Part shown: positions 12,493 through 34,735 of the stretch, in pieces | How the letters are laid out: the number at the start of each line of letters is the position of its first letter | How positions within the stretch are numbered: position 1 is the first letter of the stretch | Assembly: GCA_038087875.1 (NCBI GenBank) | Contig: CM076001.1 | Span: forward strand, 1,426,001-1,490,000 | Length of the DNA stretch: 64,000 nucleotides | Origin: Malacoraja senta | Taxonomy: Eukaryota | Direction of reading: 5' to 3' | The notes under the pieces: generated by a model | Databases searched by the model: none | Seen by the model: the letters and a program-made list of their open reading frames with translations, nothing else | What the model was told of the DNA's origin: nothing | Program-made: the position numbers and the translations under genes

Positions 12493-12839
12493 AAACCACC
12501 AAGATCGGGGAACACCACCACCAGTGCTAACCACACCTATGAATTTCTATGCAGACACAAGTAAATGCGGACGCTGAAATCGGAATCTAAAGTCTAGATA
12601 CCAAATGTCGGCTATCAATGTTCTCCTGAAATGCTGCCAGACCCGCGCAGTTAATGCTACCACCAAACTGCCGGCTTGCTCCAAAACACTATGCGAATTC
12701 ACCCTCTTGGTCTACAAGTTACTGCAGCACTTTGTGTTCATAAACATTTCATAATTGTCTCTGGTTATACAAAGGATTTGTTTTTTTTGTTGCTCTAGGA
12801 TTGTGGCCATTAAGTTATTGAGTTAGTTTGTGTATCAGA

Positions 12840-13215
12840 CATTATGAGAGGAATGGGGTGATCGTAAGGAAGTGTATAAAATCATGGGAAGAATAGATCG
12901 GGTAGATACGCAGAGTCTCTTGTGCAGAGTAGGTGAGTCGAGGAACGGGGGACACAGGTTTAAGCTGAAGGGGAAGATTAATACGATTTGAGCGGTAACG
13001 TTTTCACACGGAGGGTAGTTTGGGTGTACAGAACAAGTTGCCAGAGTAAATAGTTGAAGCTGGCACTAACCCACTGTTTAAGAATCAGTTAGACTATACA
13101 TGGACAGGACCAAACGCGGGCAGGTGGCACAAATGTAGCTTTGACATGTTGGCCGGTGTAGGCAACGTGGGCCGACGAGCTGTTTCCGCGTTATATCGCT
13201 ACATGACTCTATGCC
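12840..13215 (+). mobile_element. Decayed CR1 3' fragment (paralog at ~41885-42265)
   Basis: Aligns by eye to the CR1 3' region at 5941-6312. Confidence 0.75.
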
Positions 13216-13559
13216 TCTGTTATCTGATAAAGCCTATTGCATGTTCTAGGCCTGTGTGCATCTACAAGTAAGAATGTCATGTTCCGTTGTCGGAACAGAA
13301 TATATTTGAACACCCTGGAATCGTTACTGTTGATTCTAACGGGCAATGACTGTTGGCCGTAACAGCTATGCCCACATCCAAAACAAAGACAAAGACGATA
13401 AGGTATATAAGCAGAGTTAGGCCATTTGCCCAAATTGAAAGCCGCCGTTGGAAGTGGAAAACGAAAAATGCGTGGGTGAAGTCTGCGATATGTAGCAAGG
13501 ATCAATTCAGAGAAAAGAGGGAAAGTATCCGAGTTTGGAGCGTGAGGACGAAATGCCGA

Positions 13560-14400
13560 TGACAATGCTGCTCAAATCTCAATCAGAGTGATCAGAGTGA
13601 TCAGAACTGATCCTTCTCAAGTCCAGCGAGTGTAGGCTTGCAGTTAGCAAACGCTTCTTATGCGCGACCGAATGATCCCCAAATAATTCGCGTAAACCTC
13701 CGCTTGGCAATCTCCAAAGCCACCATATCCTTCCTTAGATACGGGACCCAAAACTGCTCGCGATATTCCAAATGTGATCACAACAGTGCCTAAAAAAACA
13801 TCTACGATTTACATTTTAGATTCCTGTTTTTATATTCAAGTCATCTCGAGATTAATGCTAAATTTAATTTGTCTCCCTGAACGACGATTCGCTCTGCAAA
13901 TTCACATTTTGGAATTCCCGCACCAACATTCCCAAGTCCCTTTGCACCTCCATTTCTGAATCCTCTCCCCATTTAGAAAATAGTCGACGTCGTCATTCCT
14001 TCCGCCAAAGTGCATGTCCGTGTGTGTGCTGTGTCGTATTTCATCTGCCACTTATTTGCCCCCTCTTCCAACCTGTTCAAATAACTCTGGAGACTCCATG
14101 CTTACTCAACACTACCTGCCACTTCACCTATTTTGGCATCGTCCACGATATCAGCCGCAAAGCCATCAATTCCCTCACCCAGATCGTAAACATACAACGG
14201 AAAAAGGATGGACCCAACATGACCCATTAGTCACAGGCAGCAAGCGGAAAAGATCACTTTTATTCCAATATTTGCCCTGCAACGGACAGCCTATCCTCTA
14301 TCCACACTGATACCTTATCTCTAACACCGATACTCCTGTCTTAATTAGCCGCTTCGCGTCCTGCACCGTTTAATATGCATCAGAAATTTTTAAGTCAGCA
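13560..14400 (-). mobile_element. Decayed CR1 RT fragment (paralog at ~42600-43450)
   Basis: Minus-strand remnants such as LLFPLYVYDLGDGIDGF...IVDDAKIG in the paralog ORF 43150-43356. Confidence 0.65.
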
Positions 14401-15099
14401 GCATTTGTGACTTTACTTTGCCCATCCTGCTTGTTACGTTCCCAAATAATTTCAACAGTTTTGTCAGGCAAAAGCCCCCACCAGCTGACTTCGCCGATTT
14501 TATCATGTGCTTCAAGGTAACTGGAACCTCATTTTTACTAATGGTCTCTAAAATCTTACCAACTATTGAAGTCGTGCTAACCACCTTATCATGACAACGG
14601 GCTTATATAAATTTCCCATACAATTTATGGGATTGATCCACGACCGCTGCGTGCGAAAGCCTGGGAAAACAATCTATTTCTTATTTCCAGGAAATAGAGG
14701 GAGGTTTTGCAGGAGAGTAGATGGGCTGCGAGTGAAACTGGACCCTCTGTAAACATTCCACAAAACTGTAATCAAACGACAGCTGGCAGACCTGTTGAAA
14801 CGGTTCTCGGGAGATGAAAATATGAACCGCAAGCAGCAAAAAGCGGGCGAACAAGATTGAAAACCAAAACTATTCTTCAATGAAATGAAAGTAAAACGCA
14901 GACGGACGTGGCCCAGTGAAGAAAAAACAACTCTTAATACATAAAGGGCAAAGTATTTATCCCGGGTTGTGTAAATTGCACTTAAAAGATGACCTTCCAG
15001 TTGCTAAACACAGAAGGCTGTGGAGGCCAAGTCAGGGGCGAAAATAAGGCAGCGATAGATAGATTTTTGATTAGTCGTGGCGTCAGAGGTTATTGTTAT

Positions 15100-15300
15100 T
15101 GCGGAGATTTTCTGCGTGTTTTGATCCGAGATCTAGGGTTTCTTCCCGCAACTCCAAATACGGAGAGTTTTGAAGGGCAATTGGCTTAGTGTTGATGTGC
15201 GGGGATTGCAGGGCGGCGCGGACTTGGTGGGCCGAAGGGCCCGTTTCCGCGCTGTGTCCCTAAACTGAACTAAACTGAACTAAAGTAAACCAACCTAAAC
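15100..15300 (+). mobile_element. Decayed tRNA-derived V-SINE (HE1-like) 3' half with CR1-type tail (paralog ~44150-44400)
   Basis: ggcgcggacttggtgggccgaagggcccgtttccgcgctgtgtccctaaactgaactaaac terminal sequence. Confidence 0.7.
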
Positions 15301-15471
15301 GAAATTAAAACTCAACTCGTCGCAGGAACAATTACAAGATTCATAAATAACGTTTCCATACATTTTGCAAACATGTGATGAACTACCGGAGACGGTACCC
15401 AGTTTCTGTGCATGTCACCGTCGCCAACAGTCAATGTTAAAACAATAACAATTCCCTGTTACTTTCTGCAG

Positions 15472-15777
15472 ATTCCATTTCCGCGGGTTCCCAGAGCCCG
15501 CCACAACAATCCTCTCTTGCTGGTGACACTGTCTCTCTTAACTGCGTATATTCCGGATTCTGTTCGTACACAGTACACTGGTACCGACATTTCCCAGGGC
15601 AAGCTCTGGAATTCCTGCTCCAAAGACACACCTCAGGAAAGCAAGATGAGGAAGAGGCTGCCGAAGGCCGCATTACTGGTTCTCTCGATCCTGGCCAGAA
15701 AATCAGCCAGTTAACGCTATCTGAAATGCTGCCGGGCGACGCGGCTGTGTATTACTGTGGGATGAGTCCGCGCATCG
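15472..15777 (+). CDS. Leaderless supporting TCR-delta V segment (NAR-TCR supporting V), copy 1
   Basis: Phase-1 acceptor ttctgcag|at; open frame (D)SISAGSQSPPQQSSLAGDTVSLNCVYSGFCSYTVHWYRHFPGQALEFLL...QLTLSEMLPGDAAVYYCGMSPRIA with both canonical Cys, Trp, an extra CDR1 Cys and a 3' RSS; no leader exon seen immediately upstream. Confidence 0.9.
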
Positions 15778-15816
15778 CACAGTGACACAGCGCAGTGAGA
15801 TAGCTGTACCAAAACC
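15778..15816 (+). other. 23-bp-spacer recombination signal sequence
   Basis: CACAGTG + 23 nt + ACCAAAACC. Confidence 0.95.
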
Positions 15817-15969
15817 TCAATGTGGCTGAATACAGGCACAGAGCACTGCAGAACATCTGGGAGCGCTATCCGAGAATCTCAGTGTAGTATGGATTGATTG
15901 CACGTTGCGAGGGAAGGAAAGAAAGAGAAAGATTACAAAGATAAATTATATTGATATTTACAGAAACAC

Positions 15970-16232
15970 NNNNNNNNNNNNNNNNNNNNNNNNNNNNNNN
16001 NNNNNNNNNNNNNNNNNNNNNNNNNNNNNNNNNNNNNNNNNNNNNNNNNNNNNNNNNNNNNNNNNNNNNNNNNNNNNNNNNNNNNNNNNNNNNNNNNNNN
16101 NNNNNNNNNNNNNNNNNNNNNNNNNNNNNNNNNNNNNNNNNNNNNNNNNNNNNNNNNNNNNNNNNNNNNNNNNNNNNNNNNNNNNNNNNNNNNNNNNNNN
16201 NNNNNNNNNNNNNNNNNNNNNNNNNNNNNNNN
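15970..16232. other. Assembly gap (263 N) over a CA/GA microsatellite
   Basis: Flanks match 45052-45060 and 45153; the paralogous interval (92 bp) contains (CA)n(GA)n. Confidence 0.9.
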
Positions 16233-18780
16233 ACGCTGAGAAGTTTCGAAGCTACCTTTCAAAAGTTTTTTGTCGAAGGTAGAGGGACAGAGGCAGTGAG
16301 AGTTCGAGGTTTGACCAAACGTTCGGGACTGCGGAAACTTTCCTTTTTCTGATGATTCCCAGCGAATCTGAGTGCCGCGAGAACGGCAGTGACTGGCGGA
16401 TTGCCACTCGTACCTGGAGACGGGAGTCGGAAAGTGGCCATGTTTATATCGTTTCTAGCACCGTAACCCTGCTCCCATGCCGTTTTGCCCAGACCAGGTC
16501 ACCTGGCTGAAAATATGAGGGTACTTTTCGAATCCGGCAGTTCTCCGGAGGCTTGGAAGGCCTGATAAAAAGACCCCCATAGAGATGCTCTCGGCAGCAA
16601 TTTGGGCTTGGCGTATTCCTTGCTCGGCTGGGAGAACTGCTTCTGCTGAAACTGACTCACAGATCGCTCTTGAGCTGAGACTGCTGTTGTCTGAGGTGCT
16701 GGTTTGTACCGCTGTCAGGATAGCGGCGGCATGGTCTCAGGCTCAGAGCTACGCAGCTGTGTTTCGGCTGCGTTTTCGGGGTCTCTCGAATAGGAGCTTT
16801 ATGTTGACTTGGGGAGGTGAGTCCAGGCTCACTAGGCTTATACAGCCCTGGCGTGACCCGCGTTCTAAAGGGATCTTGCGTTTTAAGAGGTGGGTGTTTA
16901 TGAAGGTGAGAACGGGGTCGGGCGTAGAGGGGAGCTTCTTCGTAGAGCATGATGGGATTCCCTACCACGTGCGTTGGAGTTGGGGGGAGGCACCGTGTCA
17001 TGCGTGCAAGGAGTTTGGATACGTCCGCAGGGATTGTCCCAATCGTCGGGATGCTGCGAGAAATCCCAAAGCAGCAGCACAGGAAAGCACTGCTGGCCAT
17101 CCGGGGCTGCCAGTTCCACCTCGGTGACCCGGAGCGACATTGTTGGCTCTATGAGGCTCCCCGACCCCCACGTTCTGTACCTGCCGCGGCGGATGATGGC
17201 GAGGCCCAGGGGAGCTCGGCGGGGGTGTGTGGAGGGGGGGGGATGCCGATGCAGAGAGGGAAGAAGTCCTAGAAGAAGAATACACACCTCCAAAACAAGC
17301 CACCCGCAAGATGAAGGCCCACGCCCACACCTGGGCAATCCCAAAGGGAGAATGTTGGTCCCTGTAAGGTCCAGGAATCACCTGGCGGGGTGAGCAATGA
17401 GCTGGGAGTTTCACAAGGGGGGCAGAGAGGAAAGCTGGTAGTGTGGAGGCGGAAGACTCTTCCTTTGTTGAGGTCACTCTACCGCCGCACTTCAGCGGGA
17501 CAAAAAGAAGTCGTGGGCCCTTTGAGGGAGTGCCCAAGGTTATGGGGCAACCTTCTTCGAGACCTTCCTCCACTGTCGAGGTCGGTGACCTTCCGTGCGT
17601 GTTATCTCACGTGTTGCTGGGATTGGGCGCCCCTAGAAATGTGTCCCCTGGTATGGAGGACAAGCAGAGGCAACCCGAAAGGTGGGGATGGAGTGTAGGG
17701 GTGGTTTCCCAGCCTGTGCTCCTCATTAAAGCTCCTCATTAGAGCTATCTGAGGGGGTGCTGCTCCATCGACTGAGGAAGTAGGGTAGAATCCAGAGTCA
17801 CCTACTCCTTCAAAAAGGCCAATAGTGTGGATACTCCCCCGGTGGCGGAGGCTGCAGTCTCTCTGGGTGATACTATTGTAGCGGGTACCCTTGGTGCGGA
17901 AGGGGACAGGGCTGTCTCGGGTCGTGACCCTCAATCGGATTCCGGGGGGTGCCTGCGAACCGCGGGCCCTGGCGACGTCTATTGTTTGTTCATTCCCAGT
18001 TCCAGTTTTAGGAGGCTACGGGTGAGTGCACGAGTCTGGCCATTCACTGGCCGGCTCATCGCTGTCAGAGTTATCGGGACCCTCCCTCGACACTGATCCC
18101 GGGGGTGGGATCATGCCGGGGGAGGGGGAGCGCGATGTAGCCAGCTTACAGCTTATGCAGCGGGGCGAGCGAGCTGGCAGCCAGCGGCAGCACTCCGAAC
18201 TCAGACGATGACCTTGAGCGTAGCGAGGGGGAAGATGTTGCTTCAGGTGTCAGTGGTTTGGCACAATGCCCGGATTCCAATGCTGTGTCTAGTAGGGCCG
18301 GTATCTGGGAGCTTCTGGAGTTTCTAAAGCAAACAAGTGCAGTAGTAACAAACTGGTAAACAGTGGCCGGAGCAGCCGGACTTATCCCGCCACTTGATGA
18401 TACCTTTCGCAGTAAAGAGGTTGTCCCGAGTCTGAGACGCATCAGTTCGGGGACGTTTTGAAGCTTCTAAGACGGAGAAGCCCCACTCCTACGAGAGTGT
18501 GAGGGAAAACCTTCCCTGTGTCTTCAACATGAAGATCACAGTTTCTAGTCTAAAGATAAATGGCGGAAGGGGGGACCTTCGTAGGTTTCATCATCTATCA
18601 GTCCTCAGAAAGGGGAAATATCAGTAGGTTTTTCTGCAAGAGACGTATATTGTTGCCAGTGATGAACCCATCTGTCTCCTGGAGTAGGAAGGGGGTGGGG
18701 GGGAGGGTTCTACATGAGCTAGCTCAGCACAAATTCGAGTGGGGTGGCCTTCCTGTTGCCGACGATTTTCCAGTCAGAGG
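16233..18780 (+). mobile_element. Tx1-group (L1 clade) LINE 5' portion: ORF1 and start of ORF2, decayed
   Basis: ORF1 with zinc-knuckle-like CHACKEFGYVRRDC; ORF2 begins at ATG 18529 MKITVSSLKINGGR...VFLQET (APE N-terminus); cut off by CR1 sequence at ~18781. Confidence 0.75.
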
Positions 18781-19632
18781 ACCTGAGTGGGCAGATGCAT
18801 GGGAGATGCAGTAGAAGTAGATAAATGTGAGATAATCCACTTTGGCGGCAAGAACAAGGAGGCAGATAATTATCTCAATGGTGTCAGATTAGGAAAAAGG
18901 GAAGTGCAACGAGACCTGGGTGTCCTTGTACACCAGTCACTGAAAGTAAACATGCAGGCAGTAAAGAACGATTGTAGCATGCTGGCCTTCTTAACGAGTG
19001 GATTTGCGCACAGGAGTAAAGAGGACCTTCTGCATTTGTACGGGGCCCTGGTGAGAACACATCTGGAGTATTGTGTGCAGTTTTGGTCTCCTAATTTGAG
19101 GAAGGACATCCTTGCTATTGAAGCAGTGCAGTGTAGGTTCCCGAGGTTAAATCCCGGCATGGCGGGAGTGTCATATGAGGAAATGTTGGGAATACTGGGC
19201 AGGTTATCACAGGAATTTAGGATGAGTGGGGATCTTATAGAAACATATACAATTATAAAAGGAGTGGATAAGCTAGGTGCAGGAAGAATATTCCCAATGC
19301 CAAGGGTGTCCAGAATCAGGGGGCCAAAGTCTAAGAATAAAGGGAGGCCATTTAAAACTGGGATGAGAAAACAACGTTTTCCACCAAGAGAGTTGTGAAT
19401 CTAAGGAATTCCCTGCCACAGAAGGCAATAGAGGCCAATTTCGGGATGAATTTCAAAGTGTGTTAGATAGAGCTCTGGGGGCTCGCGGAATCTGGGGATA
19501 TGGGGAGAGGCAGCACGTGTTTCTGATTGTCGATGATCAGCCATGATCACAATGAATGGCGGTGCTGGCTCGAAGGGCCAAATTGAGACCTCCTGCACTT
19601 ATTTTCTATGTTTCCATGTTTCTATGTTTCTA
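18781..19632 (+). mobile_element. CR1 3' fragment (paralog ~47706-48557)
   Basis: ORF 18787-19398 KCEIIHFG...[15 protein letters not shown]; ctatgtttc tail at ~19605-19632. Confidence 0.88.
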
Positions 19633-21425
19633 AATGCAAGTGAACGGCAGATGCCGCCGTAACAACGGAAAGAACATGGGGAGGCCCAGGGTGCTGTCAC
19701 ACCGCAGGGACTCATTGACCTTCGAATACATTTGCGCTTAGACACCGGATGCAGACCGTGAGCATACGCATTGTCCCCACAACCCTAACAGAACATAGAC
19801 ATAGAAACTTAGAAAAAGGTGTAGGAGTAGGGCATTCGGCTGATCAAACAAAATCAGTACCCGTTCCTGCTTTCTCCCCATATCTCCTGATTCTGTTAGC
19901 CCTAATCCGGGACGGCCAATCAAGACGATGCTGATGGCGTTGACGGAAGACGCATGTGTAGAGACAACAGAGGAGCTTGCCAGTTGCATGGAGGACAGAG
20001 ATGTGTGTGCGTCCTTCACCGTGCCCGTCGGGAACTAGCACCACTGCGTCGTTAATGTTTTCACCGTGTATTGTATTGTATTGTCTGTGCTATATCTAAC
20101 TTTCTATTGAAAATAGCATGTGAAATTAAATCCACTGCCTTGTGAGGCTGAGAATTCCACAGAGCATTGAGGGGCATAGCGTCATACGGTCATATTGATA
20201 CAGCGTGGAAACAAGCCATTCGGCTCATCTTGCCCACATCGACCAATATGTCCCAGCTACACTACTACCACCTGCCGCGATTGACCCATGTCCCTCCAAT
20301 CTAGTCCTATCCATCTACGTGTCAAACTGTTTGTTAAACGATGATGTGGCCCCTGCCTCAGCTGCCTCTTCTGGCTGCTTGTTCCATACACTCACTACGC
20401 TTTATGTTAAAAAGTTACCCCTCAGGTTCCTATTCAATCTATTCCGCTTCAATTAAAATCTATGTCATCTGGTCCTTCATTCAGCTAGTTAATTTTTATC
20501 TTAATATATTTGAGAAACCACCTTAACAGATATTGTAAGAGATTTAACTGTCCCCACGATGCAGGAGATAGTCAAATATGTGTAAACATTTCACAGGAGA
20601 CTCTGTCTCGGCCCTCGAATTTTCCAATATAAATTGTCAGTGCATTCCGGATGCGGATCATCTTCTTGTATTGCTTTATAGGCCAATCCCAAATTAACGC
20701 AAATTACACCGGATTAAAGCAGCAACAATTTTGGTGATGGAGTTGGAGTTAAATTACACACACAGAGACACGCGCACACACACGCACACGCTGACTAACA
20801 AATTCGCATATTTGGCTAACCCTAATTTATTCTCCCCACATTCACATGATATTGACGTTTTCCAGGTTTCAAGGTCAGTTTATTGTCACATGTACCAGTT
20901 AGGGTACAGTGAAATTTGAGTTACCATACAGCCATACTAAGTGAAAAGTCACAAGGCACAAAACCACATAAAAGTTAACATGTACATACACCACAGTTGA
21001 TTTCATATTCATCACTGTGATGGAAGGCAGTAAAGTTTAATCTGCTTCCTCTTCTTCTCCCACGGTCGGGGCAGTCAATCCATCCGCAGGTCGGGGCGAA
21101 CAAAGTCCCCGCAGCCGACGATCGAATCCCCCATCGTGCTGATCGATACTCCCGTGTCGGAGCGGTTAAAACTCTCCCCGCGGCATGAAGCTCCCGAGTC
21201 GGCTTCTTCTTACCAGAGACCGCGGGCTACACGATGTTAAAGTCCACACGCCCTGAAGTTGGAAATTGGATCCCCGACAAACGGATGGCAGGGTCCGCGA
21301 TATTAAAGTCCCAACAGACTGTTGGCGAGACATCCACAGCTGATGTTCTACCATTCATCTACCATTCATCAACGAGGAACAATGTACGATGGCCAACCAA
21401 CGGGCTCACCACCAAGTTTACTTTT

Positions 21426-21500
21426 GTTTAGTTTAGTTTAGTTTAGTTTAATTTAGTTCAGTTCAGTTTAGTTTAGTTTAGTTTAGTTTAGTTTAGTTTA
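21426..21500. repeat. (GTTTA)n microsatellite, expanded SINE/CR1 tail (paralog 50396-50480)
   Basis: 15 imperfect units here and 17 in the paralog; abuts gcgcggaaac, the reverse of the SINE terminus. Confidence 0.9.
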
Positions 21501-22955
21501 GCGCGGAAACGGGCAGATGCTGGAAAAATCGAAGATAGATAAAAAAATGCTGGAGAAACTCAGCGGGCGAGGCAGCATCAATTCAGCGAAGAAACAGGTG
21601 ACCTTTCGGGTTTCCGCCCCCCCCCCCAGCCACCCACCCCGCCCCAACCCCACATCAGTGCAAAATGGGTCTTGACCCGAAACGTCACCTGTTCCTTCGC
21701 TCCACAGATGCTGCCTCACCAGCTGAGTTTCTCCAGCATTTTTGCCACAGTCGATTTTTCCAGCAGTTCTTTGTTAATCAATTGTAACCTGTGCAGTTTT
21801 TAAATTATCTCGGGAATTTTAGGTACAAATTATTTTGCCAACTTGGTTTTCGTTCCCGTTTATAATTCCCTAATCATTAACTGCAACCAAATGCCGAAAC
21901 ATTCCATTGGGTTTATGGAAGGAGCAGCCAGAAGGGGTGGCGTAGAAAGAAATTGTAGATGCCGATTTATAGCGAAGAATGACGCACACGGATGGAGTGA
22001 TTCGGCGGGTAAGGTAGCATCTCTCGATAAAAGGGATAAATTATGTTTCTGGTCGGGGCCACTTCCTCCGCCTGAACATACAGCGGAGGGCACTGGATGT
22101 CAGTAAAGGCCAGAACAATACAGGTGGCCAAGGAAGAATGGAGGCCATAATCGCCCATTGTTGGCTGGGGGAGAGGTGATACCGAACGAATATAAACATG
22201 CGAGCAGTACAACTAGTATGATGGCTAGGTTCGGGGAGAGAGGGAGAGAAATTGAGAGACTCCGGGGATTATTTGGAATTAGAGCATTCAAAGTTCATAC
22301 CGCCGGATTGTAAGATGCACAAGCGAAATATAAGGTGCTGTTCCTCCATTTTGTGTGTGGCCTCATTCTAACCGTTGATGAGGAACAGTGCAGAAAGGTT
22401 TATATAGGAATGAGAAATGGAGTTTAAATGTTTGCAGGCGGGAGATCGTGTTACCCAAGGCGAAAATTGAGTTGTTACATTTGACTTGTTTGCTTTCCGG
22501 CATACCTCATCTGTACCTTTACTTTCGATAGACACTTTCCGCACTTAGAAGGTATTTACAACACGCTGCCTGTTTGGAACTTCGCACAATCCAGGTCATC
22601 CGCTGCAAAAACGGCAGATTCTCTTTAAATTAAAGGCCCCGATAATGAACAATCAGACGTTTTTCCAATGGTGAAAGGGAATAAAAAATACAACTTGCAC
22701 GCATTTAACTGACAACTCGTCTTTCCACACTCGTTTCGAACATAATATGTTCCGGCGCTATGAAAACATATTCGTGATAAAACAGTTGATAGATTCAACT
22801 GATCACCTGGGAATGCGTAGATCAGGCCGGAGTCAATTGAGCCCATGAATTTACAATGGAGCTGGGGGTAAAATATCAACAAATTTAATGGTTGTATGTT
22901 CACATAAATTCGATCACAAAGCCACGCACGCGTTGTTGTGATATTATTTTAACTA

Positions 22956-25271
22956 TCACTTTACCGATTTAAACATCTTTCCAGTGCAACGGAATGGATA
23001 TGTTAGCACACGGAGCAACTCCTCTCTGAACTTGCTCTGTGTCACGGTGTAAATGGCCGTGTTGGTGCAGGAGCTCAGCAGCTGAAGCAGGAATCCAACC
23101 TTTTCCAATCCTACCATAGGGTTTGTCCAGAACCTGCGTTTAACCAAATGCAAACTTCGAACCGCAATAAAATGTGCGACACTTGTCGCCCAGAGCAGGA
23201 TGAAGCAGCTCGAGATTGCCAGAAGTAAAACGACCGACCGTCTGCGGTTCACCATCTCCTGGTCTTTCTTTTTCTCCCCACCGCTGCGGTCTCGGAGGTA
23301 CCTGCGGACCCGACTGGCCACGAAAATGCGCCTGATGGTGAGCGCGTTCAGCAACAAAATCAGGCAGAATGGAATCGTCGGGGTGAACAGCTGTTCGGTC
23401 CAAGAGAACACCATCCATTCGCGACGCATATAAAAATAGACGTCTTTGACGCAGCCCAGATTCCGTTCAATTGGGAAATAAGGAACGTATGCGAAGGGCA
23501 AAGGTAGGTTCTGAAGGCAGATGAGTGGGATCGCTGTCAGGATAACAATCGACGCGGTTCTCTTGGTGCAATACTTGGCTTTCATATTCTGAGTAGAAAT
23601 CGCAACAAAGCGATCAAATGTGAAAGCGACTGTGAACCATACGGAACAATCCACCGCCACGGGTGCCAGGAACAGTATTATTTTGCACACAGGAGTGTAC
23701 GGCAAGGAACCAGGCCATAAATATATATCAGCAATCCGATGAAATATCACGTCAATGAGAAGCACAGAGAGGTCCGCAGTCGCCATGGCTACCATGTAAC
23801 GAGTGATGCACTTGGAGAGGCCGCACTTGCCACGGGACAAGATCACAATCGCCACCAGATTCACTGGGAAGGAATGAAAACATAAACTGGTTAATTGTGT
23901 GGGGTTATCGGTTGGTGGGTGAGGGTAATTTAAACGTGCGCATATTGGGGACGAAATGTTGCCTATTTCCTTCGCTTGAAGAAGGATTTCGACCCGAAAC
24001 TTTCCCTATTTCCTTCGCTCCATAGATGCTGCCTCACCCGTTGAGTTTCGCCAGCATTTTTGTCTACATTTGAGAACATGATGTCAAGGAATGGGATTCC
24101 GTGAAGCACTGCAATTATAATTACATACATCCTCCAGCGACAAACAAAAGTAACAATATAACGAGCAGTATTTTCTGCTGATATAGCGGGCGGGCCTCCG
24201 TGCTATACCTGACAAGAACAACTGCTGAAGTAGCTCAGTGGCTCAAGTAGCATCTCTGGATGACATGGATAGGCGACGTTTCATCTCGGGCCCTTTCTTC
24301 AGTCTCCGATCGGAGGAAGGATCCCGACCCGATACGTCGCCTACGTCTGTCTTCCAGAGATGCTACAAGACCCGCTGAGTTACCCAGTACTTTGTTATCC
24401 CGGCATGATCGCTGCAGCGACAGTCTCTTTTATCTGTACTTCAAAAAATCTATCTTAAAATTGCCTCCCAACCGAGGGGGGACATGTCTGGTTGTTCACA
24501 CTGACGTTTTTTGTTGAGTAAGTTGTTCATACGATCTTGAAATCTGTCCCTGCGAAATTATCCCTGTGAAATGTTAAGAGCTTTACAGAAAATGCTGTGC
24601 CGAATTACTGGACGGGATGTTTTTTTCTTTCTATCGGGTGCACTACGCACTGCGGAACAGGTAGTCTCACACACAGCGACGAGGACGTGTGGCTTGCCCT
24701 ACCAACAATGCAGGTGCGGGGCATCGGTTGTAGCCAAAGTCCGTGGAGGCTAAGCTTGTACCAGAGTCTATGAGCGACCAAAGAAACCAACGCGTTTCCT
24801 CTCTCCTAAGATGTACATTGGCTAATACGAGTTTTGTTTAGATGTACAGCCTCGAAGCGTGTTCTCCGGTCCATCGAGTCCGCGCCGACCAGCGATCCCC
24901 GCACACTAACAATGTTCGACACAAACTAGTGACTTAAACCAAATATATACCAAATCAATTACCCTTCAAACCTGTCTGTCTTGGAGAGTTAGAGGAAACC
25001 GACGCTGGTCACGAGGCGAACGTACAAATTCTGGAAAGACAAGCAACCGTAGTGGGGAGCGAGCCCTGCACCATCTGCCGCTGCGCCTTCGTGCAGCCCT
25101 TAACCCTGCCGGATTATTCCGTATGTTCTCTTAATCATTACTCCTCTGCACTTTTCAAACAGTCTTTGTTAGTTCAATGTGATGTGCCGACAATTACCTA
25201 CCGGGTATACCGATTGCTGCAAGAATCGGGTAATATACAGATTCTATATACAGGATCAGACTATAATACAT
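22956..25271 (-). CDS. Two-exon class A GPCR, GPR139-like chondrichthyan family, 325 aa, intact
   Basis: join(complement 25271..25202, 23863..22956). Exon 1 MYYSLILYIESVYYPILAAIGIP, phase-1 donor G|gtaggt; acceptor ttcccag|TG; exon 2 has ADL in TM2, FTFDRFVAI (DRY-like), and TM7 SSCTNTAIY. Family assignment is from recall of motifs, not a database search. Confidence 0.88.
24820..25085 (-). mobile_element. Decayed V-SINE (HE1-like) in the GPCR intron (paralog ~53810-54075)
   Basis: Reverse complement contains tttgtacgttcgcctcgtgacc...ggtttcctc and the gggatcgctggtcggcgcggactcgatgg terminal motif. Confidence 0.7.
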
Positions 25272-27144
25272 TTTAATTCGACGGTCCAGGCGATCACTCC
25301 TGGTGCTGCCACTCAGCGATTGACAGCGAAACAAACCAATCTCTGGCACATTTATAAAGTAAATAACGGAGAAAATATGCAATTAGATAACATCCCTGCG
25401 GACATTACTTACAGAGTTTGGAACAAACAGGTACTGTTTTCAATGTAATATTCAGAAATCACAATCACGTGGGCGACCGCTCCACACATTTCCAACAGCA
25501 GGCAGTGAAGCATGAATTTAAAAAAATCCAAACTAACGCACGCGCAGTGAAGTTGCTCACGAATGTTCGGAGCAGCGGTTTATTTCCTTGAACCTTACAT
25601 CCGATGACGGGACAAGGAAAGCTGTCATTTCTGGCTTGTACCTGTGCAACTTGAGTTTCCAGACGGCGACAGCAGAGCGCGAGCGCAACGCAGTATCGGC
25701 ACCTGAGCATATCCACTGGGCACCTAGCGGCAGTTTTCTCAGAAAAGTGGCTAATGGGGCGAAAGAGCAATAAAAGAGAGAAGAACAGTAGAGTTTATCA
25801 AGGATTAATAAAACACGAACATGTAAATTAATTATTGTGGCAGCGTGGTTCGTCTGCTCCGTCCCAGGGTTAGCAGGCAGAAGTTGGAAAGATTGATACG
25901 GACACGGGGGGTCATAAGGTCACAAGGGTTCGGAGTAAAATGAGGCCATTCTGCCCATTAAGTCTCATCCGCCATTCAATCATGAATTATCTATCCCCCC
26001 CTCCTACCCCATTCTCCTGCTTTCTGCCCATAACGACTGACGCCTGTACTAATCAATAATCTATCGATCTCTACGTGAAAAAATATCCACCGAATTAGCC
26101 CCCACAGCCTTTGTGGCAAAGTATTCCACAGATTGAACATAGAGGACTATGACGGCATCAGTTGAACAAAGGGGACTATGAAGGCATGAAAGAGGAACAT
26201 GAGAGAGGAGCTATCCTGAAAAGGACCCCTTCACTCCTACTCTTTGCTTCCTGACTGCCAACCAATTTTCTATCCATGTCAACACGCTAACCCCAATACC
26301 AATATTGTCTGCTATTTTCTTTCAATATAGTCTATTGTCTATTGAGCTGGCCAAGGCAAACTATAAAGCGGTCCTAGCAGGAATGACGGTGGAACTGCAA
26401 TGGCCGGAAGACGCAGGATCATTTCATTCCAAAAAGGAAGAAAGATTCTAAGGGGAGTAGGAGGCAACCGTGGGTGGCAAGAGAAGTTAGTGATAGAATA
26501 AAACTAAAAGAAAAGATGTATAACACAGCAAAGAGTAGCCGGAAGCCAGAGGATTGGGAAACGTTCATAGGACAACAGAAGGAAACAAAACGGGCAATAC
26601 GGGCCGAAAAGATGAAGTACGAGGGGAAGCTGGACAGGAATAGAAGGAAGGACAGTAAAAGCTTATTTAGATATGTTAAGGGAAAAAGAGTAGCAAAGTC
26701 AAATGTGGGTCCCTTGAAGGCAGACACGGGTAAAATTATTATGGGTAACAAGGAAATGGAAGAAGAGTTCAACAGGTACTTCGGATCTGTCTTAACTAAG
26801 GAAGACACAAACAACCTCCCAGGTGTACTGGAGGGCTGAGGATCGAAGGGGGTAGAGGTACTGAAAGAAATGTTCATTAGGCGAGAAATAGTATTGGGTA
26901 GGCTAATGGGACTAAAGCTTGATAATCCCAAGGTCCTCAGGGAGGTGGCTCTAGAAATAGTGGACGCTTGGTGATCATTTTCCAATGTTCAATAGATCGA
27001 GGATCAGTTCCTGTGGATTGGAGTAGAGCTAATGTTATCCCACTTTTCAAGAACGGAGCGAGAGAAAAAACCGGGGAATTAGAGACCAGTTAGCCTGACT
27101 TCGGTGGTGGGAAAGATGCTGCAGTGAAGTATTAAAAAGTTAAT

Positions 27145-28332
27145 GGTACACAAAAATGCTGGAGAAACTCAGCGGGTGCAGCAGCATCTATGGAGCGAAG
27201 GAAATAGGTAACGTTTCGGGCCGAAACCCTTCTTCAGACTGATAGGGGGTGGGGCGAAGAAAGGAAAAAATGAAAAAGGCGGAGGAGGAGCCCGAGGGCT
27301 GGAGGAGGGGAGGAGACAACCAGATGGCTGATGAAGGGGAGGGGAAAGCAAGGGCTAGCAGAATTGGGAGAATTCAATGTTCAAGCCCCCAGGATGTAGA
27401 CTGCCCAAGCGGAATATGAGGTGCATTTCCTCCAATTTACGGTGTTGCTCGCTGTGGCCATGGAGGAGACCCAGGACAGAGAGGTCAGATACGGAATGGG
27501 ATGGGGAGTTGAAGTGCTGAGCCACCGGGAGGTCAGGTTGGTTATTGCGGACCGACCGGAGGTGTTCGGCGAAACGATCGCCAAGCCTCCGCTTGGTCTC
27601 ACCGATGTAGATCAGCTGGCATCTAGAGCAGCGGATGCAATAGATGAGGTTGGAGGAGAGGCAGGTGAACCTCTGTCGCACCTGGAACGACTGCTTGGGT
27701 CCTTGAATGGAGTAGAGGGGGGAGGTGAAGGGACAAGTGTTGCATCTCTTGCGGTTGCAAGGGAAAGTATCAGGGGAGGGGGTGGTATGGGAGGGAAGGG
27801 AAGAATTGACAAGGGAGTTACGGAGGGAGCGGTCTTTGCGGAAGGCAGACATGGGGGGAGATGGGAAGATGTGGCGAGTGGTGGGGTCACGTTGGAGGTG
27901 GCGAAACTGACGGAGGATCACTTGTTGTACGTGACGGCTGGTGGGGTGAAAGGTGAGGACTAGGGGGACTCTGCCCTTGTTGTGAGTGGGGGGGTGTGGA
28001 GAGAGAGCAGTATTGCGGGGTATGGCAGAGACCCGGGTGCGAGCCTCATCTATGGTGGAGGAGGGGAACCCCCGTTCCCTGAAGAATGAGGACATTTCAG
28101 ATGCCCTGGTATGGAACGCCTCATCCTGGGAGCAGATGCGGCGTCGACGGAGGAATTGGGAGTGGGGGATGGAATCCTTACAGGAAGCAGGGTGGGAAGA
28201 AGTGTAGTCCAGATAGCCATGGGAGTCGGTAGGTTTGTAGTGGATGTCGGTAAGGAGTCTATCACCTGCGATGGAGATAGTGAGGTCAAGGAATGGTAGG
28301 GAAGTGCCGGATGGAAGTTGGTGGTGAAGCGG
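27145..28332 (-). mobile_element. 5'-truncated Penelope-like element with GIY-YIG endonuclease domain
   Basis: ORF 27355-28095 contains NLIYCIRCSRCQLIYIGETKRRLGDRFAEH; 14-bp TSD attaaaaagttaat at 27131-27144 and 28333-28346. Confidence 0.92.
27207..27237 (-). ncRNA. Minimal hammerhead-ribozyme-like core in the PLE 3' terminus (paralog 56197-56227)
   Basis: Minus strand reads CUGAAGA-AGGGUUUCGGCCC-GAAAC-GUU, i.e. CUGANGA / stem II / GAAA / NUH. Stem I pairing is only partial. Confidence 0.55.
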
Positions 28333-29745
28333 ATTAAAAAGTTAATAATGGGGCATTTGGATAGCAGTACATTAATTAGTCCAAGTCGACATGGATTTAT
28401 GAAAGGGAAATCATGCTTGGCTATTATTTTAGGATGTGACAAGTTAAATGGATGAAGGGGAGCCAGTGGATGTAGTGTATATGGACTTTCAGAAAGGCTT
28501 TGATAAGGTCCCGCACTGGTGAGTAAAATTAGAGCACATGGTAATGGGGTTGGGGTGTTGACATGGATAGAAAATTGGTTGGCAGACTGGAAGCAAAGAG
28601 TAGGAGTGAACGGGTCCTTTTCAGAATGGCAGCCGGTGGGGAGCGGAGTGCCGAAATGCTCGGTGTTCGGGCCGTAACTGTTTATCATATATATTAATGA
28701 TTTGGAAGAGGGAAATAGGAGCAACACCGCATGTTTGCGATTGACACAAGCTGGGTGACAGTGTGAACTGTGAAGAGGATGTTAGGAGGTTGCAGGGTGA
28801 GCTGGACAGGTTGAGTGAGTGGGCAGATGCGTGGCAGAATGCAGTACAATATCGATAAATGTGAGGTTATCCACTTTGGCGGCAAAAAGAAAGGGGCAGA
28901 TTATTATCTCAATGGGGCTAGCTTAGGTAAGTGGGCGGTGCAGCGAGACATGGGTGTCCTTGTACACCAGTCACTGGAAGTTGGCGTGCAGGTACCGCAG
29001 GCAGTGAATAAAGCTGATGGAATGTTGGGCTTCATAACAAGAGGATTTCAGAATAGGAGTAAAGAGGTTCTTCTGTAGTTGTATAGGGCTCTGGTGAGAC
29101 CACATCTGGAGTATTGTGTACAGTTTTGGTATCCTAATTTGAGGAAGGACATCCTGGTGATTGAGGCAGTGCAGCGTAGCTCCCGAGATTGATTCCTGGG
29201 ATGGCGAGACTGTCATATGAGAAGAGATTGAAAAGACCGGGCTTGTATTGACTGGAGTTTAGAAGGATGAAGGGATGTCTTATCGAAACATATAAAATTA
29301 TAAAAGGACTGGACAAGCTAGATGCAGGAAAAACATTCTCATTGCTCGGCGAGTCCAGAACCAGGGGCCACAGTTTTAGAATGGAGGCGAGGTAATTTAA
29401 GACTGAGGTGAGAAAAAACATTTTCCCCCTCAGAGTTGTGAATTTGTGGATTCCCTGCCACAGACAGCAGTGGAGGCCAAATCACTGGATGGATTTAAGA
29501 GAGAGTTAGATAGAGATCCAGGGGCTAGTGGAATCTAGGGATATGTAGAGAAGGCAGGCACGGGTTATTGATTGGGGACGATCAGCAATGATCACAATGA
29601 ATGGCGGAACTGACTCGAAGGGGCGAATGGACTCCTCCTGCACCTATTTTCTATGTTTCTATATTTCTATGTTACTATTCGCCACCCTCTGACTAAAGAC
29701 ATTTCTCATCGTCTCAGTCCGAAAAGAACGTCCTTTAACTCTCAG

Positions 29746-30180
29746 GGTGGATAGACTTGGCTTATACTCGCTAGAATTTAGGAGATTGAGAGGGGATCTT
29801 ATAGAAACGTACAAAATTCTCATGGGGTTGGACAGGCTAGATGCAGGAAGATTGTTCCCGATGTTGGGGAAGTCCAGGACAAGGGGTCACAGCTTAAGGA
29901 TAAGGGGGAAATCCTTTAAGACCGAGATGAGGAAAAACTTTTTCACATAGAGAGTGGTGAATCTCTGGAACTCTCTGCCACAGAGGGTAGTTGAGGCCAG
30001 TTCATTGGCTATATTTAAGAGGGAGTTAGATGTGGCCCTTGTGGCTAAAGGGATCAGGGGGTATGGAGAGAAGGCAGGTACGGGATACTGAGTTGGATGA
30101 TCAGCCATGATCATATTGAATGGCGGTGCAGGCTCGAAGGGCCGAATGGCCTACTCCTGCACCTATTTTCTATGTTTCTA
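29746..30180 (+). mobile_element. Young CR1 3' insertion present only in copy 1
   Basis: Highly similar to the CR1 at 4678-5120; the paralogous site (~58763-58776) has no element. Confidence 0.9.
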
Positions 30181-31350
30181 TTCCGAGACTTTCCCACTCG
30201 TAGCAACATCCTCATCCTCATCCACCCTATCCAAGCCTTTCACTATTCTGTATGTTTCAATTAGGTCCCCCCCTCATTGTTCTAAACTCCAGTGAGCACA
30301 GGCCCAGTGCCGACTAACGCTCCTCGTAGGTTAACCTACTATTTATTGGGATCATTCTGGTAAACTTCCTTTGGACCCTCTCCAGACCCAGCACATCCAT
30401 CCTCAGATATTGTGGCCATAATTGCTCACAATATTCCAAATGCGGCCATCTCGGCGCCTCATAGAGACTCAGCATTACAAGCCTGGTTTGGATACAAACC
30501 CTCTTGAAATAGATGCAGGCATTGCATTTGCTTTCTTCAGTAACGATTCGACTTGCAGATTAACTTTTTGGGAATCCTGCATCAGCACTCCCAAGTCCAT
30601 TTTCGTCTCCGATTTCTGGATTATCTACCTGTTTAAAAAAACATATCCTACGCCTTTATTCCTACTGACAAAATGCAAGACTCCACACTTTGCTGCACTT
30701 TATTCCATCTTCCATCTTTCTGCCACTCACCCAACCTGTCCAAGTCCTTCTGAAGAGTCCCCGCCCTCTCCAGAGCACCTGTCCCCCCACCTATATTCGT
30801 ATCATTCGCGAACTTGGCCACACAGCCTTCAATCCCCTCATGCAAACCATTAATATGCAAAATATGAGTGACGTTCCCAGAACGGACCCATGCGGAACTC
30901 CACTAGTCACTGGCAGCCAACCAGAAAAAGCCCCCTTTAGTGCCACGCTTTGTCTTCTGCCATCCAGCCAACCTGCTATCAATGCTTGTTAGTATCTGCC
31001 CTTTGATACCGTGGTGTTTCATCGTCCTTAGTCTCCTCACGTGTTGCCCATTATCAAAGTATTTCCAGAAATCTGAGTTAACAACATCTACTGACCACCG
31101 TTGCCTTGAGTATTTACCTCTTGAAAGGATCACAGAATTTTTTTAAAGCAAGACCTCCCCTTCACAAAGCCATGCTGACTTCGACCTATTTATCGTGAAC
31201 TTCTAAGTACTACGTATCTCCTGTCTCCAGTGATTCTTGAAATATCAATGTGAATGCCTGCAAAATCTCTAAAGCCACCCCTTTCAGAACACCCGGGTGC
31301 AGTCCATCAGGTCCAGGTGGCTTACGCACCTTCAGCCCGTTCAGCATCCC
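30181..31350 (-). mobile_element. Decayed CR1 RT fragment (paralog ~58777-59945)
   Basis: FSGWLPVTSGVPHGSVLG, AKFANDT, HLEYCEQLW remnants. Confidence 0.8.
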
Positions 31351-32912
31351 TTCTCCAGAGTAATAGACACTACACTAACTTCCACCCCGTGACTCTCCTG
31401 CATTCAGACACGATCCTTGTGTCTTCCATTATGAAAGACAACATGAACGACACCAGACGCCTTGTCGCTAAAACGTCTTTGATTAGAAGAGGCTTCCACG
31501 CGTGACACGTTATACACTGCTTCTAATTAACAGTAATTCCCCGCTGTAATTCGAAATCTCACTCCAGCGCAGAACACCAGGTATCCATTTTCCATACTCT
31601 GGAAGAATTAGCACCAAGAAGCGCTATACGGCCCACGTTCTGAAGAATGAGATGAAATCAGCGGTCTCCCCTCCTCTTCATCGGCTTCCCCATCTCGCCG
31701 TTCATGGCGTGGTCAGAGAGACGGTATGATCTGTGCGGACATTCAACAAGCTGGTGTAGGTGCAGGTTAAAGTGTCCTCCTTCCTTTCTGTCCGGTGAGA
31801 GCGGATTCCCGCTGTCGCGAAATCGGCATTGCTCAGACCCGGAACACGGGTGGCAAAAGTGTAGTTTTCGTTTCAAAAGTAAACATAGACGACGTGATAG
31901 CGAGGGTAAATCTCCACTTGAATGTACAATGAACGTTCACAGCACATAGTGGGATTTTGTCTGTTCGAGTCTCACATAAACTTCCGTACGCTTTACCTTG
32001 TAATCTTTCCCCAATTGCGTTCGCTGTCCTGATTCAAGTTTTGTCTATAAACGCCTGTCATTTGCCTACACCACACCGCTTGCGAGGGAGGAAAAGATTC
32101 TCATGATATTCCACATCAAGAGGATTCTGACGAACTCACCTGTGGGTTACTTTGCGAAGACGTAGCCATGTGTTTCATGACACAGGACATATATACCACA
32201 GGAGGAAATGTCCCCTCCTTGACCACTCGGGCAAAAACCTTATAGTGTGGATGATCTCTGCCACTTGCTGTCTTATAGGGAACGGAACTTCTCCCACTTG
32301 AATTCCCCTAATGGTTGAAATCCTGCATATTTAAGTATTCTCTGTATGTGCATGTGCCTCCATGTTTCGGCGATCCACGCTGATTCCTCTAATATGTTTG
32401 TAGAAATTAAGTCAATTTGGAACCGTTTTCAGTCTTACGGACGAAGACTGTTTTCGCTTCTTCCGACTGATGGTAGGGAGGGGTGGCGGCGCTGGGAGAG
32501 AGGAGAGGCAGGATAATGCGGGACACATAATAGGTGGACAATGGTGAGGGGGTGCTTCATAGCCAGATGGTTGGAACAAAGTCCAGACATTAAAATAGGT
32601 TGGAGACAGAAGTATTTAAGAGTTGTAATCTGTGAAAGGCAGGGACAATCCTGAATGCTTATTGGTACAGACAGCAACGTGAGCAGCCGCCAGGGATCCT
32701 GTTTCGGATTACGACAAGGATACTAAAGAGAATTGGTGATCTCACCGACCGATTCTCTTCTACGTACAATAAGGCTCAAAGACCACCCAGTTAATCATCC
32801 GCGCGTCCGTGATTACCGACTCCGCCACGTATCTTTGTGCAATGGACGGCACGTTGCAGAAGAAACACGGCGGACCCGCACAAAAAACCACCGCAAGCGA
32901 TTTTGCACGGTG

Positions 32913-32926
32913 CCGCCAGATGGCGC
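32913..32926 (+). promoter_or_regulatory. Candidate CTCF-binding element, copy 1
   Basis: CCGCCAGATGGCGC matches CCRCYAGRKGGCRS at 14/14. Confidence 0.6.
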
Positions 32927-34159
32927 ACTCAACTACTAGTAAGGAAATACGTAAACAATGAAATAGCAACAAAGCAATTAGTTCTCGTGGTTCAAATTAT
33001 AACTTTGTAGTTTCAATCTCTGACTGCGACCAAACTCAACCTCGAACTGCTGGCCGATGTAAGTTACCTTCATCAAATATTCTCCGTCTTATACAGACGA
33101 CAATCTTATAACTGAACCCCATTGGAAGACTGGAAGGTACACACTGGAGAAACTCAGCGGGTGCAGCAGCATATATGGAGCGAAGGAGCTAGGCAACGTA
33201 TCGGGCCGAAACCCTTCTTCAGAGTTTCTACAGCATTTGTGTGTACCTTCGATTTTCCAGCATATGCAGTTCCCTCTTAAGCCCATTGGGAGACTGTCGT
33301 GAAAGGGAGGGGAGAAAAAGTATCAAAGTATTTTCTTGTGCTTTCTCAGCCAACGGATTAAACAAGGACATCCCAGCACGACGACACACGACAGTCATGG
33401 GAAATAGCCTGTGCTTTATCACCACGTAGTTTTTCATCTCTGTGCATGAATCTGGCGCACGCGTCTGGCCTTTGGTTAATGGCAACGAAGAGGTGTCTCA
33501 AGAACTTCAACAACTGCTGCTGTTCGGAGTGGCGCACCGCATCGTCGCCCTGCTGCACCACAGCGGAACAGGTAGAGGTAGAAACATAGAAACATACTAA
33601 AACTGGTGCAGGACTAGGCCATTCGGTCCTTCGAGCCAGCACCACAATTCAACATGATCATGTCATATGCTGAGAGAATGGAGCGGCTGGGCTTGTATAC
33701 TCTGGAGTTCAGAATGATGAGAGGGAATCCTATTGAAAAATATAAGATTATTAAGGGTTTGGCCAGTCTAGAGCCAGGAAACATGTCCCGATGTTGGGGG
33801 AGTCCAGAACCAGGGGGCACAGTTTAAGAATAAGGGGTAAGCTATTTAGAACGGAGATGAGGAAACACTTTTTCTCACAGAGAGTTGTGAGTCTGTGGAA
33901 TTCTCTGCCTCAGAGAGCGATGGAGGCCGGTTCTCTGGATAGCGGAGTCAGGGGATATGGGGAGAAGGGATGAACGGGGTACTGATTGGGGATAATCAGC
34001 CATGATCACATTGAATGGCGGTGCTGGCTCCAAGGGTCGAATGGCCTACTCCTGCACCTATTGTCTTTTTCTGTTGTCTATAATTTTATATGTTTCTATT
34101 AGATCCGCTCTCATCCTTCTAAATTTCAGCGAATAGAAGCTCAGTCGACCCATTCTAGG

Positions 34160-34735
34160 CATAGACATAGACATAGAAAATAGGTGCAGGAGTAGGCCAT
34201 TCGGCCCTTCGAGCGTGCACCGCCTTTCAATATGATCATGGCTGATCATCCAACTCAGTATACTGTACCAGCTTTCTCTCCAAACCCCCCTGATCCCTTT
34301 AGCCACAAGGGGCACATCTAACTCCCTCTTAAATATAGCCAATGAACTGGCCTCAACTACATTCTGTGGCAGAGAATTCCAGAGATTCACCACTCTCTGT
34401 GTAAAAAATGTTTTTCTCATCTCAGTCCTAAAAGATTTCCCCTTTATCCTTAAACTGTGACCCCTTGTTCTGGACTCCCGCAACACCGGGAACAATCTTC
34501 CTGCATCTAGCCTGTCCAACCCCTTAAGAATTTTGTAAGTTTCTATAAGATCCCCCCTCAGTCTTCTAAATTCCAGCGAGTACAAGCCGAGTCTATCCAG
34601 TCTTTCTTCGTACGTCAGTCCCGCCATCTCGGGAATTAACCTAGTGAACCTACGCTGCACTCCCTCAATAACAATAATGTCCTTCCTCAACTTAGGAGAT
34701 CAAAACTGCACAGAATATTCCTGGTGCGATCTAAA
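34160..34735 (-). mobile_element. Young CR1 3' fragment within a nest of CR1 pieces (33580-34735; paralog ~62175-63330)
   Basis: ORF 34058-34690 is CR1 ORF2 C-terminus; catagacatag tail. Confidence 0.88.

Follow-up and report, generated by a model that had tools for sequence, protein, structure and literature searches.

In this study we analysed a 64,000-nt stretch of the genome of the skate Malacoraja senta, called here the window, in which position 1 is the first letter and to which all coordinates refer unless another locus is named. We observed that it carries a gene for a G-protein-coupled receptor (GPCR), placed in antisense among the segments of a NAR-type T-cell receptor (NAR-TCR) array. 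It is a passenger gene, that is, a non-TCR gene flanked by rearranging variable (V) segments and duplicated within the NAR-TCR repeat. Two copies are present in the window. The first, copy 1, is probably a functional member of a skate clade of receptors, which would have been multiplied passively with the NAR-TCR unit and whose role most likely has nothing to do with V(D)J recombination.

The initial annotation of this DNA had described an antisense seven-transmembrane receptor of 325 aa at 22956-25271; both the length and the coordinates were reproduced by a spliced coding sequence (CDS) of two exons. The open reading frame (ORF) 23864..22956 of the minus strand encodes 302 aa when counted from a GTG and, when the same frame is read further upstream, no in-frame ATG is found before a stop. 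Joining 25271..25202 to 23863..22956 on the minus strand gives a CDS of 978 nt with an open frame, encoding 325 aa followed by a stop. Exon 1 of copy 1 is matched in Amblyraja radiata and in Leucoraja erinacea, and the NCBI models of the skate orthologues P0001-P0003 have two exons as in copy 1, with the same short first exon. The donor GTAGGTA and the acceptor TCCCAG are unchanged in three loci of these two other skates (L001 and L003 of A. radiata, L002 of L. erinacea), and the split between exon 1 and exon 2 is seen in L001-L003 and in L005-L007, which are described below. A retrogene origin of the GPCR was rejected because in all loci the intron occupies the position usual for the family. 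Upstream of copy 1, the only TATAAA within 630 bp is found 85 nt ahead of the ATG, and an ATTAAA lies 66 nt past the stop codon; judged from the sequence, these motifs are only consistent with a transcription unit.

We then considered the position of this gene among the V segments. The three V segments of the window are all on the + strand, with their recombination signal sequence (RSS) on the right side, and the GPCR is on the minus strand; it is thus antisense to them. Its location after a supporting V and before the next NAR V, as proposed from the first reading of the sequence, is indeed seen in the order 15489-15767 (+), 22956-25271 (-) and 40203-40475 (+). Copy 1 stands 7.2 kb to the right of the supporting V, which faces its 3' end; on the side of its 5' end, the next NAR V follows 15 kb to the right. 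The NAR-TCR cassette, as reportedly defined by Criscitiello et al. in 2006, consists of an IgNAR-type V with its RSS, its own D (diversity) and J (joining) segments, and a leaderless TCR-delta V that has a splice acceptor, an extra Cys in the complementarity-determining region 1 (CDR1) and an RSS. In the window, a splice acceptor (..TTTTCTGCAG) is found just ahead of the supporting V at 44581, and the other elements are given in Table 1. By this definition, the V-D-J-supporting V assembly of the window is a NAR-TCR cassette.

That the GPCR is amplified together with the cassettes had also been proposed, and the window bears this out. The segment 12493-35405 matches 41543-64000 in four collinear blocks with 96-98% identity and an offset of about 29 kb, and this duplicate carries both the supporting V and the GPCR. 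The second copy of the GPCR, copy 2, spans 51948-54262 on the minus strand; a change of TGG to TGA at 52708 replaces a Trp by a stop in extracellular loop 1. The proposal of a complete receptor in each unit is therefore right for copy 1, which is intact, and wrong for copy 2, which is stopped by this TGA. Exon 2 of copy 2 differs from that of copy 1 at six positions, comprising one nonsense change, three amino-acid changes and two synonymous ones. In total, 6 of the 978 coding nt and 19 of the 1338 intron nt differ between the two copies, and about 1.8% of the positions across the surrounding block. We read copy 2, on the strength of these differences, as a probably freshly disabled copy. The TATAAA at 25356 in copy 1 corresponds to CATAAA at 54347 in copy 2, so that the copy with the nonsense change also carries an altered TATA-like motif. 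The two supporting V copies (15489-15767 and 44581-44859) differ by 2.5% of their nucleotides and by 3 aa, the nucleotide divergence being four times that of the GPCR coding sequence (0.6%).

The product of copy 1 is a class A receptor by profile and predicted fold. It matches the Pfam family PF00001 (7tm_1) over profile positions 2-260 of 260, with an E-value of 3.2e-14 and a score of 53.5 bits for a gathering cut-off of 30.5. Its hydropathy profile has six strong segments and a weaker seventh transmembrane (TM) segment, TM7; TM1 is partly coded by exon 1. An AlphaFold2 model, for which the input was a 40-sequence alignment of the family, shows a seven-helix bundle with long TM2-TM7 helices and a helix 8 (predicted local distance difference test score, pLDDT, 73.2; predicted TM-score, pTM, 0.69). 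When this model was submitted to Foldseek, at least 500 matches were obtained in the PDB, and the best ones are class A receptors throughout, of the peptide type, with TM-scores of 0.63-0.72; the solved class A receptors that resemble it in fold share 17-22% identity with it. The class A hallmarks found in copy 1, namely the Asn of TM1, the Asp of TM2, the Cys pair of TM3 and extracellular loop 2, the D-R-F that closes TM3 and the Trp of TM6, are all invariant in the family. The motif of TM7 is N-T-A-I-Y (N-T-x-I-Y in the family) and not NPxxY. That this could be the sign of a damaged gene was rejected: N-T-x-I-Y is invariant across the whole family, and is thus a family trait.

To which family this receptor belongs was examined by a search against 5.8 billion proteins (E<=0.001), which returned 2166 homologues. 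Among the matches listed, nearly all are chondrichthyan and bear the NCBI name 'probable G-protein coupled receptor 139'. The best ones, from L. erinacea and A. radiata, are 77-84% identical to the copy 1 product; those of sevengill shark, sawshark and sawfish follow with 58-62%. Of the 87 columns that are at least 90% conserved among 116 more distant members of the family, copy 1 retains 83; its changes in the remaining ones (L>M, L>F, L>M and P>Q) are conservative and common to the other skate array copies. In a maximum-likelihood tree, the window protein and P0001-P0004 form a TCR-linked skate clade with a support of 100/100. It is nested in a batoid clade, itself part of a subfamily that roughly tracks elasmobranch phylogeny with lineage-specific expansions.

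The receptor had been called GPR139-like, and this resemblance is nominal only. Compared with solved structures by phmmer, it obtains 28.6 bits with human GPR139 (E 9.5e-6), 30.3 with the PrRP receptor and 29.8 with 5-HT2B. In the Foldseek list GPR139 comes at ranks 21-22 with 19% identity, behind the CCK, CXCR2, GPR15, neurotensin, neuromedin U, ghrelin, TRH and CCR1 receptors. Orthology to GPR139 was rejected, as human GPR139 is no closer by sequence or by fold than other peptide-type class A receptors such as those for PrRP or CCK, and since it scores no better than they do we consider 'GPR139' to be an automatic label. Human GPR139 (PDB 7VUG), from which the NCBI name of the homologues comes, shares with the skate receptor the class A seven-TM fold and a short N-terminus; the whole family of the skate receptor has N-T-x-I-Y in TM7 instead of NPxxY, and human GPR139 is a distant relative rather than an orthologue. 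According to the sequence comparisons and the predicted structure, the family appears to be a lineage-specific, elasmobranch-wide orphan family of peptide-receptor-like class A GPCRs.

A search for the same linkage in other elasmobranchs had been suggested as a check. The DNA surrounding the closest homologues was retrieved, and the V domains and the GPCR exons of the window were located on it. In A. radiata (CM021380.1), the locus at 58.33 Mb (L003), read in the orientation of its GPCR, contains a NAR V (-), the GPCR (+), a supporting V (-) and a NAR V (-) with a period of about 16 kb, which is the arrangement of the window with a shorter period. At 59.30 Mb of the same sequence (L001), the GPCR is followed by an inverted supporting V, and the 10 kb from this supporting V to the GPCR follow the window in collinear order, with an identity of 75-91%. 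In L. erinacea (JAMYXN010000208.1), two GPCRs of this type (L002 and L004) have segments of both kinds, NAR V and supporting V, as neighbours. The closest homologue (+) in the sawfish Pristis pectinata (L006) is separated by 9.4 kb from a V of the supporting type in inverted orientation; this V has its CDR1 Cys within F-C-x-x-T-V-H-W-Y-R and an RSS with a 23-nt spacer. The linkage thus exists in two other skates and in a sawfish. Because the arrangement of V and GPCR is common to A. radiata, L. erinacea and P. pectinata it must be old, and from these sequences it appears to predate the skate-sawfish split. We also observed that the distances between supporting V segments rank as those between GPCRs do, with L003 further from the window than L001; since they differ by little (0.06-0.09), this matching order counts as weak support. 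Around the next-closest skate paralogue (L007), which is on another chromosome of A. radiata, no V was found within 10 kb.

These loci also showed some irregularities. In L001 (2426-17446), a cassette made of a NAR V and a supporting V lies on the strand of the GPCR just upstream of it and the inverted supporting V lies downstream, so that the cassettes stand head to head; this is either an inversion within the array, in which case some cassettes would need inversional joining, or an assembly error. In L003, an orphan first exon of the GPCR (1110-1178), 83% identical to that of the window, is found without exon 2 and without the supporting V at the places where the unit predicts them, which suggests that a deletion removed part of one A. 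radiata unit. In L004, a second and far more divergent member of the GPCR family (42% identical) is present on the opposite strand at 18125-19030, 7 kb past the array-type GPCR; more than one GPCR subfamily is therefore found in or beside the TCR region of L. erinacea. In the sawfish locus L006, the intact supporting-type V has a second V fragment 1.5 kb away, at 18536-18805 on the + strand, with a disrupted frame.

We then looked for traces of selection on the receptor. The ratio dN/dS (ω), obtained from pairwise Nei-Gojobori (NG86) values, which are crude and mix paralogues with orthologues, is 0.54-0.67 among the skate array copies and 0.29-0.38 when these are compared with sawfish and sevengill shark. 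Divided according to the topology of the protein, ω is 0.35-0.45 in the TM helices and 0.55-1.14 in the three extracellular loops, where dN is 3-4 times higher; a dead gene would not show such a heterogeneity. Exon 2 is open in copy 1 of the window, in L001, L003 and L004, and in the loci of sawfish and sevengill shark (L005), and in L002 it stops a few codons short, within the tail. No internal indel was found in exon 2 in any comparison, for 11-20 gap events in the intron, which is similarly long, and 4-10 in the 611 bp upstream. In simulations of random substitutions, the ORF stayed open in 5%, 4%, 2% and 0.1% of the trials after 93, 101, 132 and 250 changes, respectively. Our reading of these sequences is that the GPCR lineage is probably not a decaying passenger but a working and fast-evolving one, with ongoing birth and death of copies. 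Helices with a low ω and fast loops would fit a receptor that diversifies its ligand-facing side. The initial annotation had foreseen that the gene could be a pure hitchhiker, recognizable by a neutral dN/dS and by the lack of linkage in related species; neither sign is seen here, because the linkage is conserved and constraint acts on both the ORF and the TM core.

The 611 bp upstream of the ATG of copy 1 (25272-25882) are 93% identical to L001 9391-10000, for 90% in exon 2, and only about 185 bp of this stretch can be aligned with L002 and L003. This conserved stretch may be a promoter or mere local variation.

Sequencing runs were examined as well. Two runs, X1 and X2, whose kind is unspecified, hold about 70% of the words of the gene and were compared with 21500-26500. 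Their depth is flat over the exons, the intron and the unique flanks, and no joint from 25202 to 23863 is listed; they therefore behave as DNA of a multi-copy region. They carry a mix of copy-1-type and copy-2-type letters. The stop variant of copy 2 (equivalent position 23716) is not among the X1/X2 variants listed, it being understood that contigs drop rare variants and that 17 more variants exist beside those listed. Two runs from another organism, X3 and X4, gave only short pieces of high depth. A Logan contig of 1270 bp (P0025, L008), with an ORF of 344 aa for a paralogue, was rejected as an mRNA: its N-terminus is a read-through of the intron acceptor, and it is thus unspliced.

The features of the window are collected in Table 1. 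The left edge of the duplicate abuts a run of N at 12293-12492, and unit 1 contains another one at 15970-16232. No NAR V of the first unit is visible in the window, and the DNA to the left of the first N run (6400-12292) bears no match to the corresponding NAR V region in unit 2 (35405-41543); in the first cassette, the NAR V is therefore either missing or hidden. Transposons make up the bulk of the 29-kb unit, which is therefore longer than the unit of about 16 kb in A. radiata. Each unit has on the minus strand one 246-aa GIY-YIG-like ORF (27355-28095 and 56345-57085), of a kind typical of Penelope-like retroelements, and fragments of reverse transcriptase were found at 5750-6394, 7806-8462, 18787-19398, 34058-34690 and 62653-63345.

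Table 1. Coordinates of the GPCR copies, the NAR-TCR segments and the tandem duplicates in the window.
Feature	Position	Strand	Remarks
GPCR copy 1, exon 1	25202..25271	-	70 nt: ATG + 23 codons + base 1 of codon 24, then GTAGGT donor
GPCR copy 1, intron	23864..25201	-	1338 nt, GT..AG; pyrimidine tract, CAG acceptor ends at 23864
GPCR copy 1, exon 2	22956..23863	-	stop included; codes for end of TM1 through TM7 and C-terminal tail
GPCR copy 2, exon 1	54193..54262	-	identical to copy 1 exon 1 (same 23 residues)
GPCR copy 2, exon 2	51948..52854	-	premature stop; V>M, A>V, F>L
Supporting TCR-delta V, unit 1	15489..15767 (to 15816 with RSS)	+	RSS23 heptamer at 15778; beyond 3' end of GPCR copy 1
NAR-type (IgNAR-type) V, unit 2	40203..40475 (to 40526 with RSS)	+	RSS heptamer at 40488
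D-like element with RSS	40891		between NAR V and second supporting V
J-like element behind heptamer	41251		between NAR V and second supporting V
Supporting TCR-delta V, unit 2	44581..44859 (to 44908 with RSS)	+	leaderless; RSS23 at 44870
Tandem duplicate, copy 1	12493..35405		carries supporting V, GPCR and transposon debris
Tandem duplicate, copy 2	41543..64000		reaches end of window

Several observations weigh against a working receptor lineage. Beside the crudeness of the pairwise ω values already mentioned, the ω of the skate copies is high for a housekeeping-type gene, and for the likely orthologous pair L001/L002 it reaches 0.94, on 36 changes only, which points to a weak constraint in the skate clade. 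Compared with A. radiata, the identity is 89.5% in exon 2 and 88% in the adjacent stretch made of the upstream region and the intron. One of the two GPCR copies of the window, copy 2, is already dead, and the runs X1 and X2 look DNA-like. As for the linkage, no V was found within 10 kb of the sevengill-shark gene (L005), and no gene is annotated within 10 kb of the catshark (P0034) or stingray (P0028) gene, a statement that concerns the annotation only. If the GPCR copies were functionless and neutral hitchhikers, and copy 1 had stayed open through a recent duplication or a gene conversion, then the nonsense mutation of copy 2, the ω of 0.94 between L001 and L002 and those among skate copies, the like divergence of exon 2 and of nearby non-coding DNA, and the runs without a listed exon-exon joint would all find an explanation. 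We nevertheless hold this to be unlikely. Across 93-250 nt differences, the ORF has remained open in copy 1, L001, L003, L004, sawfish and sevengill shark, which would happen by chance in 0.1-5% of cases for each comparison; exon 2 is free of frameshifting indels when the intron has accumulated 11-20 gap events; constraint is 2-3 times stronger in the TM helices than in the loops; and the splice sites are conserved, as are 83 of the 87 family-conserved positions.

The conserved linkage could also be taken as a sign of functional coupling, in which the GPCR is expressed in lymphocytes, or its promoter or antisense transcription opens the cassette, the dosage follows the V used, and the linkage itself is selected. 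Sawfish and skates indeed share both the linkage and the orientation, with the 3' end of the GPCR facing the inverted supporting V, and conservation with L001 is higher over the 611 bp ahead of the ATG than over exon 2. We judge such a coupling quite improbable, given that the upstream conservation ends about 185 bp out in L002 and L003, and that the linkage of the trypsinogen genes in the TCR beta locus (TRB) is also conserved, without a known immune role (PMC2685407). In addition, the nearest skate paralogues, on another chromosome, have no V within 10 kb, and the GPCR family therefore needs no TCR context. There would be only a slim chance that the placement of the receptor, one per cassette and in antisense, has been kept since before the skate-sawfish split on account of a use or a regulatory role in the lymphocytes in which the NAR-TCR is rearranged; as examples of such a role, a promoter or an antisense transcript might open the cassette, or the choice of V might set the copy number of the GPCR in a T cell. 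An artefact of assembly, by which the duplicate of about 29 kb would come from collapsed or duplicated haplotypes or from mis-joins at the N runs and the stop of copy 2 from a sequencing error, seems to us extremely unlikely. The two N runs of unit 1, and the fact that the stop is not among the X1/X2 variants listed, would agree with it, but the copies differ by 2-4%, with indels, across 22 kb, which is beyond allelic noise. Moreover, the repeating V-GPCR unit is present in two independently assembled skate genomes, and X1 and X2 contain copy-1-type and copy-2-type letters together, as expected of several paralogous copies.

For the reading that we prefer, a working receptor passively multiplied with the NAR-TCR unit, the following course of events may be proposed. 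An ancestral GPCR would have adjoined a supporting-type TCR-delta V before the split of skates and sawfish. In skates, it would then have joined, in the opposite orientation, the repeat unit formed of NAR V, D, J and supporting V. Segmental tandem duplication of this unit probably multiplied the GPCR passively, in a birth-and-death process in which copy 1 would be alive and copy 2 just hit by a nonsense mutation. Under selection, the reading frame would have stayed open and the helical core intact, with a fast evolution of the extracellular loops. The linkage presumably persists because the DNA that contains the GPCR is duplicated as one block. We infer that the product of copy 1 is expressed and signals as an ordinary G-protein-coupled receptor. 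Its ligand is probably small and bound in the helix bundle and the loops, since the N-terminus is very short (about 10 residues), and its function is most likely independent of the TCR and unrelated to V(D)J recombination.

This arrangement would have a somatic consequence. Deletional V(D)J joining removes the DNA between the joined segments. If D, J and constant (C) segments lie to the right, as the orientation of the RSS suggests, the joining of any V located to the left of the GPCR would delete the GPCR on that chromosome. By analogy with the TRB trypsinogens, this somatic loss would most likely be a by-product.

The closest precedent is indeed that of the trypsinogen genes of the TRB locus (PRSS/T1-T8), of which there are 8 in human, 20 in mouse and 5 in cattle, with a widely conserved synteny (PMC2685407); the human T4-T8 lie between TRBV29-1 and TRBD1 (PMC8945572). 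As in the skate, these are non-TCR genes at V segments, locally duplicated and kept in synteny for long, and they are placed partly where V-to-D joining excises them. The skate passenger differs from them in being a seven-TM receptor of an orphan family, in antisense, with one gene per doubly rearranging NAR-TCR unit, and its locus is TCR alpha/delta, not beta, in a batoid host. Function and expression are known for the trypsinogens, whereas the skate GPCR is known from sequence alone. The olfactory receptor (OR) genes at the border of the mammalian TCR alpha/delta locus (TRA/TRD) are comparable in another respect, being class A GPCRs of a large and fast-evolving family beside TCR alpha/delta V genes. 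We know of no case in which these mammalian OR genes are duplicated with V segments as one unit. Unlike the skate gene, which is not an OR, they mark the edge of the locus; for 6 of 9 species, the 5' borne gene that IMGT gives for TRA/TRD is OR10G3 (PMC8945572). Cartilaginous fish have very few canonical odorant receptors (PMC11979771).

As regards novelty, a map of the elasmobranch antigen-receptor complex gives the antigen-receptor genes and a marker gene only, with no mention of a GPCR (PMC12227049). In a full-text search, which did not cover Criscitiello 2006 and Ott 2021, neither GPR139 nor any other GPCR came up in maps of the NAR-TCR or TCR alpha/delta loci of cartilaginous fish, and a literature search found no paper linking GPR139-like genes to these animals. 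The earlier remark that no such receptor has been reported in a NAR-TCR array thus agrees with our literature search, in which no paper describing one was found. Public NCBI annotations already place GPCR models beside double-V models.

Taken together with the trypsinogens and the OR genes, the skate GPCR is an addition from cartilaginous fish to the short list of unrelated genes found inside antigen-receptor loci. It offers a natural system for asking how passenger genes last in DNA subject to germline duplication and to somatic deletion, and whether such genes get silenced in lymphocytes. Were its copy number in a T cell to be set by the V that was joined, a GPCR signal would be tied to the choice of the TCR. 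If it were a mere hitchhiker, it would still be a useful marker for reconstructing the growth of the NAR-TCR array. In addition, it gives an entry point to the role of a very large and undescribed family of chondrichthyan orphan GPCRs.

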